Below are positions 4,469-32,221 of a stretch of DNA of 64,000 nt, piece by piece. Both the position numbers and the translations under genes were made by a program. The notes below the pieces were generated by a model, which did not search any database, was not told the origin of the DNA, and saw only the letters and a program-made list of their open reading frames with translations. The number at the start of each line of letters is the position of its first letter. Positions within the stretch are counted from its first letter, which is position 1. Origin of the DNA: Octopus sinensis (lineage: Eukaryota); assembly GCF_006345805.1 (NCBI RefSeq), contig NW_021837026.1:1-64000 (forward strand), in the 5' to 3' direction.

Positions 4469-5692
4469 ATGAATGATTTAAGAAAACCAAACAAACCTGA
4501 TTCAGGTGAGAGGCCATATCACTGTGATATCTGTGGTAAGTCATTCTCTCAAAGAGGTTCCTTGACTAGCCACATACTTACACATACAGGAGAGAAGCCA
4601 TTTCATTGCAATACCTGTGATAAATCATTCTCTCAAAGTAGTTCCTTGACTATTCACGTACGTACACATACGGGAGAGAAGCCATATCATTGTGATATTT
4701 GTGGTAAATCATTCTCTCGAAGTGGTGTCTTGTTTAGACACAAACGTACACATTCGGGAGAAAAACCATATCATTGTGACATCTGTGGAAAATCATTTTC
4801 TGAAAGTGGCCACGTGACTAGGCACAAGCGTACTCATACAGGGGAAAATCCATATCACTGTGATGTCTGTGGTGAATCATTTTCTCATAATAGCTCTTTA
4901 ACTTATCACAAACGTGTGTTCATACAGGTGAGAAGCCATATCATTGTAACATCTGTGGTAAATCTTTCTCTCTAAATAGTAACTTGACTAAACACAAACT
5001 TACACATACAGGAGAGAAAGCATATCGTTGTGATATCTGTGGCAAATCATTCTCTAGAAATAGTAACTTGACCAGTCACAAACATATTCATACTGGGGAA
5101 AAACCATATCATTGCAATATCTGTGGCAAATCATTTTCTCAAAATGGTACCTTAACTTGTCACAAACATACACATACAGGAGTGAGGCCATATCGTTGTG
5201 ATATCTGTGCTGAATCTTACTCTCGGAGTGATGCCTTGGCTAAACACAAACTTTCACATACAGAAGAAAAGCCATATAAATGTGACTAGTCACAAACGTA
5301 TTCATACTGGAGAAAAAACCATATCCATGTGATATCTGTGGTAAATCATTTTCTCATAATAGTGATTTAACTCGTCACAAACATATTCATACATATCATT
5401 GTAATATTCATGGTAAATCTTTCATTCAAAGTGGTGAGTTGATTAAACGCAAACTTACACATACAGGAGAGAAAGCATATCCTTGTAATATCTGCGGTAA
5501 ATCATTCTCTTGACCAGTTACGAATGCATAACAGTGTCATATCTGCGGTAAATCATTCTCTCAAAAATCAATTTATCTAATCACAAACTTATTCATATAG
5601 GAGAGAAGCCATATCATTGTAATACCTGTGGTGAGTCATTCTCTCAAAAAGGCCACTTAATTACACATTTGAATATTCATACACAAGTGTAA
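4469..5692 (+). pseudogene. G2: disrupted C2H2 zinc-finger gene
   Basis: ORFs 4469-4975 and 4984-5289. There is a +2 (GT) insertion near 4915, a finger-core deletion near 5285 and further indels and stops. It ends with the family terminus ...IHTQV* at 5692. Confidence 0.85.
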
Positions 5693-5927
5693 CCGTATGA
5701 ATATCAAAATTATTACAACATACCAATTAATGAATATTTTGTCTGCTAAAAGACAGGGTTTATTCCTCTTCAAGCTTGACATTATCAACTTCAGTTTCTT
5801 GGATGTCAACATGAAATTCATGAATCACAACTTCAATATCATTTATATATCTAAATATATCAACACAGAGATGACTTTGGTTTCTGGAGAGGATTGTGCT
5901 GGATTTTTGAGGAATTTGTTATGTGAG

Positions 5928-5954
5928 AATAAAGGAATGGGAATAAGGAATAAA
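5928..5954 (+). terminator. Paired AATAAA polyadenylation signals (conserved 3' flank)
   Basis: GAGAATAAAGGAATGGGAATAAGGAATAAAAG about 240 bp after the stop. The same motif is at 22045-22071 (G4), 32675-32701 (G6) and 51103-51129 (G8), and inverted behind G3, G5 and G7. Confidence 0.6.
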
Positions 5955-6135
5955 AGTTTTGACTGACATTGATTTTGTCTTTGTTGTGTTTTCATCATCA
6001 TCCTCTAACATCCATTTTTAGCATCCGTTTTCTATGCAGGCTTTGATGGGAAAGTGTGATATGAGCTGGCAAGCCAGAGTGCTGCTCCACGTTCCTGTCA
6101 GATTGGGCTTGGTTTCTTTGGCTCTATGCCTTTAA

Positions 6136-6357
6136 CCCTTTCAATACCAACCAAGCTGAAACCTGCTCTGGCTCTGTTGTACAAGTGTCTTGTTATCATA
6201 AATTTTGAATTAAAATCTTCCACGAAACCTCAGTCACAATTTATGTTCCTAACACTAGCTTAACAATAATGAAGTTATTTTACTAAATTCTTTGTTATAT
6301 TTAAAATTAATTGAAAGAAACACAGAGCATCTCAACAGAAATATGGTAATGAAAGGG
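6136..6357. mobile_element. piggyBac-like MITE
   Basis: TTAA on both sides; TIR CCCTTTCAATACCA / TGGTAATGAAAGGG. Confidence 0.8.
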
Positions 6358-6999
6358 TTAAGATACATGGCGCATTTTATAAATATTCCTGTTCAAGAAT
6401 CATAACAGTATCAAACATGTAGTAGCGCTTTCAGTTGTGTATTTAATTTGATATATGTATTTGTGTGAACATGATATCAGTCTGACAACTAAAATAATAG
6501 AAATCTTGTATTTTGAGTATTTTTTTCATATGAGTCAGAAGCATGGACTCCCTTCTACGAAGAAATAGAAAAACTAAAATTTTTTCGCATGTGGTGTTTG
6601 CACCACAACATATGCAGCAAAATGGCAAGATAAGACATTAAATGTAAAATCTTAGTAATATGGACTCATTTGCTTACAGCCAATAATATCTCACCATGAC
6701 CTTGTTGTCAAGTTAACGAACATACTCTACCAAATAAACTCAAGATGAAGAAAGGTGTTGTAAGTCGACTGATCACCAAGTTATGCCACATTTTAAAAGG
6801 CGACAAGTAATTAGATTTGCATCTATACCTGTTATCAGGGAAGTTAAGTTAATTTTTTGGCTCAAAAAGCGAAAAGCAGGGCCATGTAGGGGGACATGGA
6901 GTTATGTACAGGGAGGGTGATCATGCCATTTGTGGTCAACGGAGACTTTGAAACTAGCAGTCGTTGGCAGCTTATTCCACTGATCCGTAACCCGGACGG

Positions 7000-7250
7000 A
7001 GAAAGCCCCTCTCCTTCAATTGAGATGAAATCATCGCAGATAGAGCTTTTCGGAGTGATCCCGCAGCCGACGCTCTGGAGCAGGAGTGCAAAACAGCTCT
7101 TTTGAGAGTTTACACTTTCTGCTTATGATGTTGTGAGCAAGAATGAGATCACCACGGCGTCGTCGTTTTTCTAGAGAATAAAGGTCGAGCGTCTTCATCC
7201 TTTCTTCATAAGACATGCTTGAGACCAAGAACCATGCGGGTAGCCAGCTT
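7000..7250 (-). mobile_element. CR1-clade LINE ORF2 C-terminal fragment
   Basis: SYEERMKTLDLYSLEKRRRRGDLILAHNII in ORF 7031-7297. Confidence 0.75.
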
Positions 7251-29710: not shown

Positions 29711-29725
29711 CTATAATAATAAAAA

Positions 29726-30386
29726 GGCAATCTTTCGTCTCTAGTAGACCTTTCCGAAAAAATTTTTTTTGTTTTACATATGGGCTTGCGGGAAATTTTG
29801 AAGTAATGAGAGCGAAAGAGACTAAGAGAAAGCCATTTTTATGACGAGGGAAGTTCTTTTGAAGTTACCGTGCATGGCAAGCATTGATGTACATGTGTGT
29901 GTGTGTGTTTGATGAGGTGTGGGAGACAGACAGTATGTTGTGTAAGTGAAGTGCTTCTGTTAGTGTGTGTGAAAGAAAGAGATAACTGAAATTTTTTACT
30001 TGGTGTATGTGTATATGTATGTATATTACTTGAAAAGTTCCCGCAAGCCCATATGTAAAAAAAAAATTTTTTTACGGTGTGGTGTGGTGTTGAAGGAGTG
30101 TGACGGAGCGGGAGGGAGCGGAAGTGGGTCTTGCAGGGCGCATGCGCCGGCGGAAGCTGAAGTGACAGACAGAACGCACGTGCGGCATTGACCAAGCCAG
30201 ACAGACTTGAGAACGACGCCAACACGACAAGAGGCTAGCAAGTTGGCTGAAGGCGAATCCGACTTCATCTCCTCAGGTAAGACCAAATTACACTTCTAAT
30301 TCTTTCCTTGTTCTGTTACGCTCCTTTCACCACACGTATTACATAGGGAAATCGACGTAAAGTTCTACTAGAGACGAAAGATCGCC
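29726..30386. mobile_element. GG-terminal TIR element (661 bp) with GC-rich core
   Basis: 23-bp TIR GGC(A/G)ATCTTTCGTCTCTAGTAGA; absent from the paralogous site at 1790-2066. Confidence 0.8.
30100..30283 (+). promoter_or_regulatory. Candidate promoter, first exon and splice donor inside the TIR element
   Basis: GCGGAAGT, GCGCATGCGC (30138-30147), CACGTG, then CAG|GTAAGA at 30276/30277. Function is inferred. Confidence 0.45.
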
Positions 30387-30639
30387 AATAATAATAGTGT
30401 TGATGAGAATAATCTTTTGTACTTTAGACACGAGTTCAGGAAATTGGCGGGAGAAGCGGACGTCGCTTCCATGGAACAATGTGCGCTAATGTTTCTTGTT
30501 TGTTTTTACCTCGAAAGGATGAAAGCCAAATTCTACCTGGATGGGATTTGAACTTTTAGAGTGAAGACGGACGAAATGCTGTTATGCATTTTGTTCGGCA
30601 TGTGAACGATTCTGCTAGTATAACGTATTATTGCATATG

Positions 30640-30819
30640 TATTGGGTTGTCCGGAAAGTTCGTGCCGATTTTTGAAGGAAAGAAAAAGGTCAATAAATAC
30701 TTGCCAATACATTTTTAATCAACCAAATATGAACCGTTTTGTTGCACAATGCGTCTCCATCTTTCCTTTAACTTGAAAATACCCTCTTCCCAGAATTGAG
30801 GTGGTTTCATGCCAAAGAA
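30640..30819 (-). mobile_element. Mariner 3' remnant (duplicate of 1362-1541)
   Basis: TATTGGGTTGTCCGGAAAGTTCGTGCC TIR; reverse-complement identity to the first copy. Confidence 0.8.
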
Positions 30820-31402
30820 AAAAGGTAATGGAGGAAAACAGGTTAGAATTTAGAGAAATGTAGAAACGCTTCATCTATGTACAGAATGTTGTGAAAGTTT
30901 CAAAGCCTCAATGGAATCTGACCCCTGAAAACATAGACATTAAATGGATGACAATGTTGATGTAAGATTTGCAATGTTGAATTACTATGTCGTTTAACGA
31001 TTCTCTTTATCTCATGCTTCTTTTTTTCTACTTCAGAATATCACATCATGTTGACGTTAAAGAAATCTCTTCATTCAGATGTACCTCTGATATTTTGATT
31101 GACTTTCATCAATTAAAGGAAGACCATATATTCATAAGGCACATTCATCAACGCATCAATGACAAACGATAAGAAAATATTTCTTCTACGATGGAATTAA
31201 GAGCAACTTTTTTGTTGCCTTCACTGTTTGGAATGTAAAAAAGGTGATTGCTTGGATAAATTTACAAAAGTTTTAACTGTTTACATCTGCCATTTTAGAT
31301 GTTAAGCAAGAACATAGTGTTAAATTATTCTCTGAAAATACTGACACAACTGAACACAAATACATTCATAGAAATGAAAAAATCATTATCGTTGGGATAC
31401 GT

Positions 31403-32221
31403 ATGAGAAGTTTTTATCTTATAATGAATGATTTAAGAAAACCAAACAAACCTGATTCAGGTGAGAGGCCATATCACTGTGATATCTGTGGTAAATTATT
31501 CACTGAAGAAAGAGTCTTGACCAAACACAAATGCATTGATACAGGAGAGAAACCACATCATTGTGATGTCTGTGGTAAATCATTCTCTCAAAGTAGTTCT
31601 TTGACTAGGCACGTACGTACACATACAGGAGAAAAACCATATCATTGTGATATCTGTGGTGAATCATTTTCTGAAAGTGGCCACGTGACTATGCACAGGC
31701 GTACTCATACAGATGAGAAGCCATATCATTGCAATATCTGTGGTAAATCATTCTCTCGAAGTAGTGACTTGTTTAGACACCAGCGTACACATACGGGAGA
31801 AAAACCATATCATTGTGATATCTGTGGTGAATCATTTTCTCAAAATAACTCTTTAACTTATCACAAACGTGTTCATACAGGTGAGAAGCCATATCATTGT
31901 AACATCTGTGGTAAATCTTTCTTTATAAATAGTAACTTAACAATACACAGACGTATTCATACAGGAGAGAGGCCATATCATTGTGATATCTGTGATAAAT
32001 CATTCTCTACCAATAGTCATTTGACTCGTCACAAATATATTCATACTGGAGAAAAACCATATCATTGTGATATCTGTGATAAATCATTCTGTAGGAATAG
32101 TGACTTGACTAAACATAAACGTATTCATACTGGAGAAAAACCATATCATTGTGATATCTGTGATAAACCATTCTCTAGGAATAGTGACTTGACTAAACAT
32201 AAACGTATCCATACTGGATAA
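31403..32221 (+). CDS. G6: C2H2 zinc-finger protein truncated by a nonsense codon (8 fingers plus 1 degenerate)
   Basis: 272-aa ORF with the conserved ATG at 31424. The stop is GGA TAA in a TGEKP linker; decayed fingers continue to the TQV* terminus at 32436. Confidence 0.8.

Follow-up and report, generated by a model that had tools for sequence, protein, structure and literature searches.

Cephalopods show some of the largest expansions of C2H2 zinc-finger genes in the animal kingdom, and the cluster described here raises the question of whether its genes share fingers only by descent or have also exchanged them. The window is a stretch of 64,000 nucleotides of Octopus sinensis (contig NW_021837026.1), and it carries ten poly-C2H2 zinc-finger genes (G1 to G10) built from 84-bp finger units. 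The original prediction proposed that a cassette-exchange system shuffles single fingers between paralogs and so generates new DNA-binding specificities. It assigned this ten-gene finding to positions 4469-32221, a span which holds G2 to G6 only, since G1 lies at 1..640 (minus strand) and G7 to G10 are also outside. The total of about 120 fingers given there was approximate: 108 canonical fingers were found by regex and 129 units by profile, including degenerate ones.

The arrays of the ten genes repeat the C-X2-C-X12-H-X3-H motif with a period of 84 bp (28 residues) and the linker consensus HTGEKPY, so they are of the Krueppel type. Profile matches in G3, G4, G6, G7 and G9 correspond to zf-H2C2_2 (PF13465, E=4e-71 to 2e-129) and zf-C2H2 (PF00096, E=4e-51 to 6e-84). 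Only C2H2 families were detected by Pfam in the zinc-finger ORFs, without KRAB (PF01352), SET or other effector domains; the absence of KRAB refers to the ORFs in the window and not to possible upstream exons. The profile search gave zero Pfam matches for the non-zinc-finger ORFs of the window, and the ORF at 7607-8203, suspected to be a Penelope-like GIY-YIG remnant, was rejected on this basis. Rfam and tRNA scans of the window found nothing.

Searches with whole proteins returned only generic vertebrate zinc-finger proteins with no more than 59% identity, and a query made of the leader and the first fingers was needed to reach the best named relatives, which are zinc-finger proteins of O. 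vulgaris, O. sinensis and O. bimaculoides with up to 88% identity. No identical entry was retrieved for the G4 protein. Moreover, the O. vulgaris chromosome OX597842.1 contains two loci with homologous gene units, whose flanks are 86-96% identical; on the chromosome homologous to it, the whole cluster extends over hundreds of kb. Regarding these octopus relatives and the tandem arrangement of the genes, the window most likely represents a C2H2 expansion specific to the Octopus lineage.

Every copy keeps a 5' flank of about 600 bp with decayed finger units and acceptor-like TTTCAG motifs (for example 3880..4468, plus strand; others at 641-1400, 10786-11394, 19906-20585, 28406-29005, 30827-31402, 41242-42228, 48489-48962 and 56382-56798). 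A conserved 3' flank was also found (for example 21807..23479, plus strand; others at 5693-6662, 27321-27773 and 32438-33610), and flanks are homologous across all copies. In the first 470 bp of the 3' flank, G4 and G6 are 97% identical, G2 is 95% identical to both and G5 89-90% identical to the others.

Intact ORFs are present in G3 (9481..10785, minus strand, 16 units), G4 (20586..21806, plus strand, 406 aa, 14 fingers in the order F1, three extra, Q, R, R, E, N onward), G7 (40021..41241, minus strand, 406 aa, 14 fingers) and G9 (56799..58139, plus strand, 446 aa), the last one without the usual terminal finger and 3' flank of the family. About half of the copies are broken. G2 (4469..5692, plus strand; fingers QRGS-Q-R-E-N onward) is pseudogene-like, with a 2-bp insertion near 4914 followed by several frameshifts. 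G5 (27774..28405, minus strand) has a 1-bp deletion in its first finger (~28323), in a short A run, and presents its own array type, Q'-ENSN-RSGS-RNSQ-LNSD-RNSD-last. In G6 (31403..32437, plus strand), two linkers contain a TAA stop (32219-32221 and ~32303) and 39 bp are deleted close to the 3' end; G8 (48963..50884, plus strand, 23 units) has a 1-bp deletion near 50230. G10 (63687..64000, minus strand) is a fragment with indels, of which the window includes the 3' end alone; it matches the 3' end of G8 with 93-97% identity in its last fingers and flank. The 3' part of G1 is cut off at the window start, and the gene shows a 21-residue leader followed by F1-Q-E-R-X-N-7.

The finger modules said to recur in different genes were located at the following positions: QSSSLT(I/R)HVRTH in G1 (404-486, minus strand), G2 (4603-4684), G4 (20970-21053) and G6 (31557-31639); ESGHVT in G1 (320-403, minus strand), G2 (4769-4851) and G6 (31640-31723); the GENP linker followed by GESFSHN(S/N)SLT in G1 (68-151, minus strand), G2 (4853-4938) and G4 (21306-21389); RSSDL(Y/F)RH in G4 (two copies, 21054-21221) and G6 (31724-31807); and NSQL(T/I)IHKRVH in G3 (10066-10149, minus strand), G8 (50722-50803) and G10 (63766-63849, minus strand). 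Nucleotide identity between these units is 90-99% versus a background of 75 +/- 6%, and five identical 12-residue helices are common to different genes versus 0.05 expected from position-wise shuffles, values which identify the recurrences as homology and not chance. Identical helices of 6 residues are common by chance, with about 6 pairs expected. QRSNLT, described as finger 1 of both G8 and G9, is indeed present in both, but the match is weak, with a nucleotide identity of 82% that lies in the top 12% of the background values, and in G8 it is the first canonical finger, preceded by decayed units.

Homologous modules could be common to several genes simply by descent, through duplication and the loss or gain of fingers, with no sequence moved between paralogs. 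The arrays of recent paralogs are collinear, as expected from such a history: reciprocal-best fingers gave 21 concordant and 0 discordant pairs for G4-G6, 10 and 0 for G1-G6, and 6 and 0 for G1-G4. Many of the differences amount to simple indels of fingers or to fingers copied in tandem, such as the R-R pair of G4 (G4_6/7, 98% identity), G6_8/9 (95%), the internal two-finger duplication of G7 (fingers 7-8 and 9-10) and the five-finger (420-bp) block of G8, present in three copies (49377-50635). Adjacent fingers average only 0.77 identity and values of at least 95% are limited to a few pairs, so the arrays are not minisatellite-like.

This collinearity contradicts the free shuffling of single fingers that had been proposed, and the exchanged pieces are instead blocks from about four fingers to half a gene plus its flank. 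One real change of order was found, Q-E-R in G1 and G6 versus Q-R-E in G2 and G4. Its derivation from an ancestor with two R fingers was rejected because the R fingers form no two clades (92-96% mutual identity), which favours a later rearrangement. A minimum of two out-of-register exchanges is required to produce this change, which counts against the explanation preferred below.

Duplication and loss alone become extremely improbable when the closest relatives are followed along each gene. G6 resembles G1 from the 5' flank (95.5% identity to the G1 flank at 839-1794) up to and including finger E, and it resembles G4 from finger R onward, the 3' flank included. The switch between both fingers was significant in the triplet test (max-chi-square table [[64,19],[1,9]], permutation p=0.0004), and the breakpoint interval (31720..31745, plus strand) spans the linker and the first part of the following finger, where conservation within the repeat unit is highest. 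G2 had been described as having a G5-type start with G1/G4-type middle fingers, which is correct: its 5' module is G5-like, its middle fingers are G4-like and its 3' flank is G4/G6-like. The 5' flanks of G2 and G5 are 93% identical, and polarised shared-derived sites upstream group G2 with G5 in 22 cases and with G4 and G6 in 0, whereas downstream the counts are 0 and 6-7, respectively (Fisher p=2.7e-6 for both flanks). Furthermore, the closest relative switches within the DNA upstream of G3 and G4, both regions being chimeric (p<0.0005); in G3, the proximal 125 bp including the leader are G8-like (90.3%) and the sequence past ~10832 is G4-like (87.6%). Breakpoints are thus also found in the non-coding upstream and downstream flanks.

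The 5' modules and the array types occur in all four possible pairings (G1/G6, Lx, G5 and G2), which is a module-level violation of the four-gamete test. G3 carries a conversion-like patch (fingers 7, 8, 11 and 12; 9856..10317, minus strand), split by an indel of two fingers (G3_9-10), with 96.6% identity to fingers V10-V13 of a paralog from O. vulgaris (L002 5896-6225) inside surroundings of 86-88% (Fisher p=3.5e-6). The O. vulgaris loci used in two of the mosaic arguments may belong to a different species or to a different section of the cluster. The congruence predicted by duplication and loss was not found, and there is strong statistical evidence that 5' parts, finger blocks and 3' parts are discordant. 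Judged by these comparisons, the paralogs are true mosaics beyond duplication and finger loss. Hence, whole-gene trees of cephalopod zinc-finger genes will be confounded by mosaicism.

These results come from the assembled sequence of a single haplotype, and apparent mosaics could also arise if the assembler had wrongly joined different copies of this repetitive cluster. The region is highly repetitive and the G5 frameshift is in an A run, but the differences of 3-12% between paralogs suffice to separate the copies, the mosaic patterns span kilobases at consistent identity levels, and comparable mosaics appear in the independent chromosome assembly of O. vulgaris. Besides, the G6 stops are substitutions and the G2 lesion is an insertion of 2 bp, so an artefact of this kind is very unlikely. 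A single reciprocal inversion of the head-to-head genes G5 and G6 was also considered as the source of both chimeras. It fits G6 and the inverted intergenic homology, but the G2-like 5' array that it predicts is unseen in G5, and therefore it is kept as one possible route only.

The highly probable explanation is a lineage-specific cluster of KRAB-less poly-C2H2 genes in which birth-and-death evolution is accompanied by non-allelic recombination or gene conversion. Local duplication would have copied whole gene units, each with a 5' flank of about 600 bp, the 84-bp finger array and 0.5-1.7 kb of 3' flank, often placed as head-to-head pairs, and in-register gain or loss of one to five fingers would have diversified the copies. 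Hybrid genes and patches spanning a few fingers may have arisen between paralogs through non-allelic homologous recombination or gene conversion, amino-acid substitutions would have gathered in the recognition helix, and about half of the copies would have decayed afterwards. Crossovers could tend to resolve in the 51-nt stretch of linker and beta-hairpin that is near-identical across fingers, which would place the limits of the exchanged pieces at finger boundaries and give them the appearance of cassettes. In this regard, the mean major-allele frequency is 0.89 in linker and hairpin columns versus 0.74 in helix columns, and the synonymous sites of the linker DNA are almost invariant. The pN/pS ratio is 1.19 (about 1.1-1.2) at helix positions versus 0.25 in the framework; the helix value is about 1 and not clearly above it, and the exchanges may also affect DNA-binding specificity.

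The mosaic paralogs are the part of the predicted cassette-exchange system that holds; a dedicated system does not fit the breakpoints in flanks, the lack of effector domains and the frameshifts or stops in half of the copies. In such a system, silent or broken donors would be deliberately copied into expressed genes, yielding new specificities against transposons. Block transfers that stop at finger boundaries, broken copies as potential donors, fast-evolving helix positions and the 71% of intergenic DNA repeated within the window would suit it, as would the enrichment of octopus zinc-finger motifs in TE consensus sequences, reported from a prediction at genome scale (PMC10547256). Nevertheless, the conserved linker DNA alone predicts breakpoints at finger boundaries, every copy has a conserved 5' flank and leader of its own, and the helix pN/pS is not clearly above 1. 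Directionality, an initiation site and an associated enzyme gene were all unseen in the window, where the non-zinc-finger ORFs lack Pfam matches. Programmed gene conversion relies on a single expressed acceptor or a few and promoter-less donors with a defined direction, which is not the arrangement found, because all copies keep their 5' flank and leader and the exchanges take in non-coding flanks with no evident direction. A dedicated system has therefore hardly any probability, and the breakpoints in non-coding flanks point to generic non-allelic recombination or gene conversion.

It is unlikely, although somewhat less so, that recombination between paralogs is a selected source of novel combinations of fingers, as part of an arms race against the transposons of the octopus. 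In that case, head-to-head inverted pairs and near-invariant linker DNA could help recombination, broken copies could be a reservoir of finger blocks, and the cluster would represent, in an invertebrate and independently of KRAB, a counterpart to KZFP evolution.

Under the preferred explanation, generic recombination in a birth-and-death cluster, no new molecular system is revealed. The same processes have been described in vertebrate KZNF clusters (PMC3126818, PMC5363842, PMC2604467), which also present tandem organisation, divergence that commonly proceeds by duplicating and deleting fingers, pseudogenisation, fast-evolving DNA-contacting residues and signs of recombination between paralogs. 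The octopus genes differ in that their ORFs lack KRAB or another effector, the leader consists of decayed fingers and many copies are head-to-head. The octopus cluster thus diversifies like KZFP clusters without KRAB, here at nucleotide resolution, and the processes common to both (gene duplication, finger gain and loss, hybrids, conversion patches, fast helix evolution and pseudogenisation) support a general, convergent mode of evolution for poly-zinc-finger clusters.

PRDM9 arrays (PMC2779102) are alike in their 84-bp fingers, able to recombine in or out of register, and in the concentration of variation at helix positions. However, the octopus cluster is multigene instead of one hypervariable gene, its ORFs have no PR/SET domain, and with adjacent fingers at 77% identity its arrays are not near-identical minisatellites. 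Hybrids formed by unequal crossing-over are known from tandem families such as haemoglobin Lepore and the red/green opsin genes. G6 and G2 resemble them in having one switch point inside the gene, on whose 5' side gene and flank derive from one paralog and on whose 3' side from another, but the 84-bp periodicity also permits out-of-register exchange, which alters finger number and, once, finger order.

Other octopus and coleoid C2H2 expansions (Albertin et al. 2015, cited through PMC10547256; Holzinger et al. 2025, PMC12513265) are alike in the tandem cluster, the finger-only proteins and the TE-rich surroundings. A term search found recombination, gene conversion, shuffling and pseudogenes unmentioned in the 2025 study (PMC12513265), to which block-level mosaicism adds a layer. 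The surroundings of the present cluster are also TE-rich, and one TE copy in the window is 98% identical to O. vulgaris OX597842.1.

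The window (GC ~36%) carries ten poly-C2H2 zinc-finger genes or remnants, G1 to G10, on strands -,+,-,+,-,+,-,+,+,-, with four head-to-head pairs. G3 (9481-10785, -), G4 (20586-21806, +), G7 (40021-41241, -) and G9 (56799-58139, +) are intact, while G1 (1-640, -) and G10 (63687-64000, -; also with indels) are truncated at the start and end of the window. The other four are damaged: G2 (4469-5692, +) by 2 inserted bp near 4914 and additional frameshifts, G5 (27774-28405, -) by the loss of 1 bp from its first finger, G6 (31403-32437, +) by two in-linker TAA stops and a deletion of 39 bp, and G8 (48963-50884, +) by a 1-bp deletion near 50230. 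A regular expression found 108 canonical fingers in the whole window and a profile of the 84-bp unit found 129 units, including decayed ones in leaders. The Pfam search returned C2H2-type families only, with no KRAB, SCAN, BTB or SET domain.

The finger modules that the original prediction listed as recurring between genes are all present and homologous at the DNA level, the named ones being 90-99% identical. In the all-against-all comparison, finger pairs have a background identity of 75 +/- 6%, with >=90% in just 0.8% of them. Five identical 12-residue helices are shared between genes, against 0.05 expected under position-wise shuffling. QRSNLT, shared by G8 and G9, stands apart from the other modules with a nucleotide identity of just 82%; identical six-residue helices are common by chance (22 observed vs ~6 expected).

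The claim that fingers have been shuffled stands only in part. In recent members of the subfamily of G1, G2, G4, G5 and G6, which have a common leader ([14 protein letters not shown]), reciprocal-best fingers are collinear, with one true order change. Concordant/discordant pairs are 21/0 for G4-G6, 10/0 for G1-G6, 6/0 for G1-G4, 14/1 for G2-G6 and 5/1 for G1-G2. The different company of the modules comes mostly from finger indels and tandem copies: G4 has three extra fingers and G1 the finger X, fingers 6 and 7 of G4 are 98% identical and fingers 8 and 9 of G6 95%, G7 contains a two-finger copy within its array, and G8 has a five-finger block three times (49377-50635). The G8 block copies are unevenly alike (fingers 14 and 19 are 99% identical, their neighbours 87-90%), and the frameshift of this gene is where copies 2 and 3 meet. 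The true order change concerns the fingers Q (QSSSLT), E (ESGHVT) and R (RSSDL), arranged as Q-E-R(-X)-N in G1 and G6 vs Q-R-E-N in G2, G4 and the O. vulgaris paralog V (locus L002). Since R fingers are all 92-96% identical to one another and do not split by position, the Q-E-R order is a rearrangement in the G1/G6 lineage, which required at least two out-of-register exchanges.

On the sequence as assembled, exchange between paralogs is real. G6 resembles G1 in its 5' flank (95%) and fingers F1, Q and E (96-98%), and G4 from finger R onward (R 96%, N 99%, 3' flank 97%), with a breakpoint at 31720-31745 (triplet max-chi-square [[64,19],[1,9]], permutation p=0.0004). When shared sites of G2, G4, G5 and G6 were polarised with outgroups, 22 upstream derived states were common to G2 and G5 and 0 to G2, G4 and G6, whereas downstream the counts were 0 and 6-7, respectively (Fisher p=2.7e-6 for this contrast in G2). 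Furthermore, G3 upstream sequence is G4-like beyond ~10832 (87.6% to G4, 66.5% to G8) and G8-like proximal to this point, leader included (90.3% to G8, 71.0% to G4), and the distal upstream of G4 is 93% identical to that of its head-to-head neighbour G3; chimerism tests of both upstream regions gave p<0.0005 each. A stretch of ~2.1 kb on the downstream side of G5 (25650-27745) has a 96-97% identical counterpart downstream of G7 (37861-39585), although the arrays of these two minus-strand genes are only ~80% alike.

The proteins retrieved with a query of the G1 leader and first fingers were mainly from Octopus vulgaris, O. sinensis and O. bimaculoides, at up to 88% identity. Two O. vulgaris loci on chromosome OX597842.1, L001 and L002, hold paralogous gene units with flanks 86-96% identical to the window, and a TE copy at these loci is 98% identical to that of the window. 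These relatives place the window in an octopus genome. In the O. vulgaris gene Lx, the 5' flank and F1 finger are of G1/G6 type (92-98%) but the array is of G5 type (90-95%), so that 5' module and array type occur in all four possible pairings (G1/G6, Lx, G5, G2), a four-gamete violation at the module level. Moreover, the identity of G3 fingers 7, 8, 11 and 12 (within 9856-10317) to fingers V10-V13 of V is 96.6% (284/294), against 86-88% (281/326) in the collinear flanks (Fisher p=3.5e-6), which makes them a conversion-like patch of ~4 fingers; this and the four-gamete argument lean on O. vulgaris loci, which may belong to the same species as the window or to a sister species. Considering G6, G2, G3/G4, Lx, the G3 patch and G5/G7 together, a history of duplication and loss only, which would have refuted the original prediction, does not hold.

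This exchange is most likely generic non-allelic homologous recombination and gene conversion, acting among the direct and inverted repeats of the cluster: breakpoints are found in non-coding flanks besides the arrays, each copy keeps a separate flank and leader, and transfer between paralogs shows no evident direction. The most conserved part of the unit is a 51-nt stretch encoding [17 protein letters not shown], with a mean major-allele frequency of 0.89 vs 0.74 in helix columns. Exchanges would be expected to resolve in this stretch, which would explain why the swapped pieces resemble finger cassettes; the G6 breakpoint interval falls exactly within it. Several synonymous positions of linker and beta-hairpin codons are near-invariant across 118 units (TAT and CCA 100%, TGT 93-97%, AAA 96%), which points to constraint on the DNA itself, codon bias or homogenisation.

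The DNA between G1 and G2 (839-3919) matches that between G5 and G6 (28966-31355) collinearly, as an inverted copy. Given these inverted copies and the largely head-to-head layout, recombination between inverted arrays is a possible route, and it could swap promoters. A single reciprocal inversion was considered as the origin, but G5 does not fit it. Between its upstream region (2724-3019) and its array (1778-2586), one minus-strand gene of L002 carries 140 bp in plus orientation (2582-2722), comprising the last part of F1, finger Q and the beginning of the finger that follows. This is a micro-inversion inside a finger array, and it shows that arrays do undergo internal rearrangement.

Regarding selection, 65 finger pairs with >=89.5% identity gave a pN/pS of 1.19 at helix positions -1 to 6, 1.07 at the contact positions -1, 2, 3 and 6, and 0.25 in framework plus linker. 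The framework has thus been under purifying selection, so that the encoded proteins were functional. Specificity residues change as fast as neutral sites or slightly faster, short of demonstrated positive selection.

Primate KZNFs commonly diverge by finger duplication and deletion (PMC3126818), mouse KZFP paralogs show recombination with "drifting and shifting" of finger arrays (PMC5363842), and human poly-ZF genes show adaptive change at contact residues (PMC2604467). That C2H2 genes have expanded in octopus is established (PMC12513265; Albertin et al. 2015 as cited in PMC10547256). Recombination, gene conversion, shuffling and pseudogenes did not come up when the 2025 cephalopod paper (PMC12513265) was searched by term. 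In view of these parallels and of that silence on exchange, the cluster is a new example of a known evolutionary mode, not a new system. Unlike PRDM9 arrays, its adjacent fingers share only 77% identity. Enrichment of octopus ZNF motifs in TE consensus sequences has been predicted (PMC10547256), and TE targeting by the genes of this cluster, as originally proposed, is speculation.

Each copy has a conserved 5' flank of ~600 bp, and most have a conserved 3' flank of 0.5-1.7 kb, except G9 and part of G7 directly past the stop codon. There, a dispersed SINE-like repeat is inserted immediately behind the stop codon of G7 (39585-40018) and G9 (58140-58400), with other copies near 34172-34419, 59819-60065 and 61517-61758. 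Beyond the repeat, G7 returns to the normal 3' flank of the family; in G9, both the terminal finger and the 3' flank typical of the family are missing. The leader and the DNA immediately upstream of each array consist of decayed finger units, seen as weak profile matches (4371-4515, 20452-20633, 28359-28512, 31317-31471, 48890-49124, 56725-56875 and equivalents). In G1, G3, G6, G8 and G9 the reading frame continues open 5' of the first ATG. Because acceptor-like motifs (polypyrimidine-CAG/TAG) occur in the conserved 5' flank, there may be further exons upstream.

Pfam gave no match for ORFs outside the gene units; a 198-aa ORF (7607-8203, -), suspected to be a Penelope-type GIY-YIG nuclease remnant, likewise had no Pfam match and no search backed it. 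Within the window, 71% of the remaining DNA is repeated, and young intergenic tandem repeats lie at 13941-14742 (73 bp x 11, 99% identity), 36006-37438 (476 bp x 3, 96%), 17781-18718 (318 bp x 2.9, 90%) and 47139-47795 (~52 bp x 12.7).
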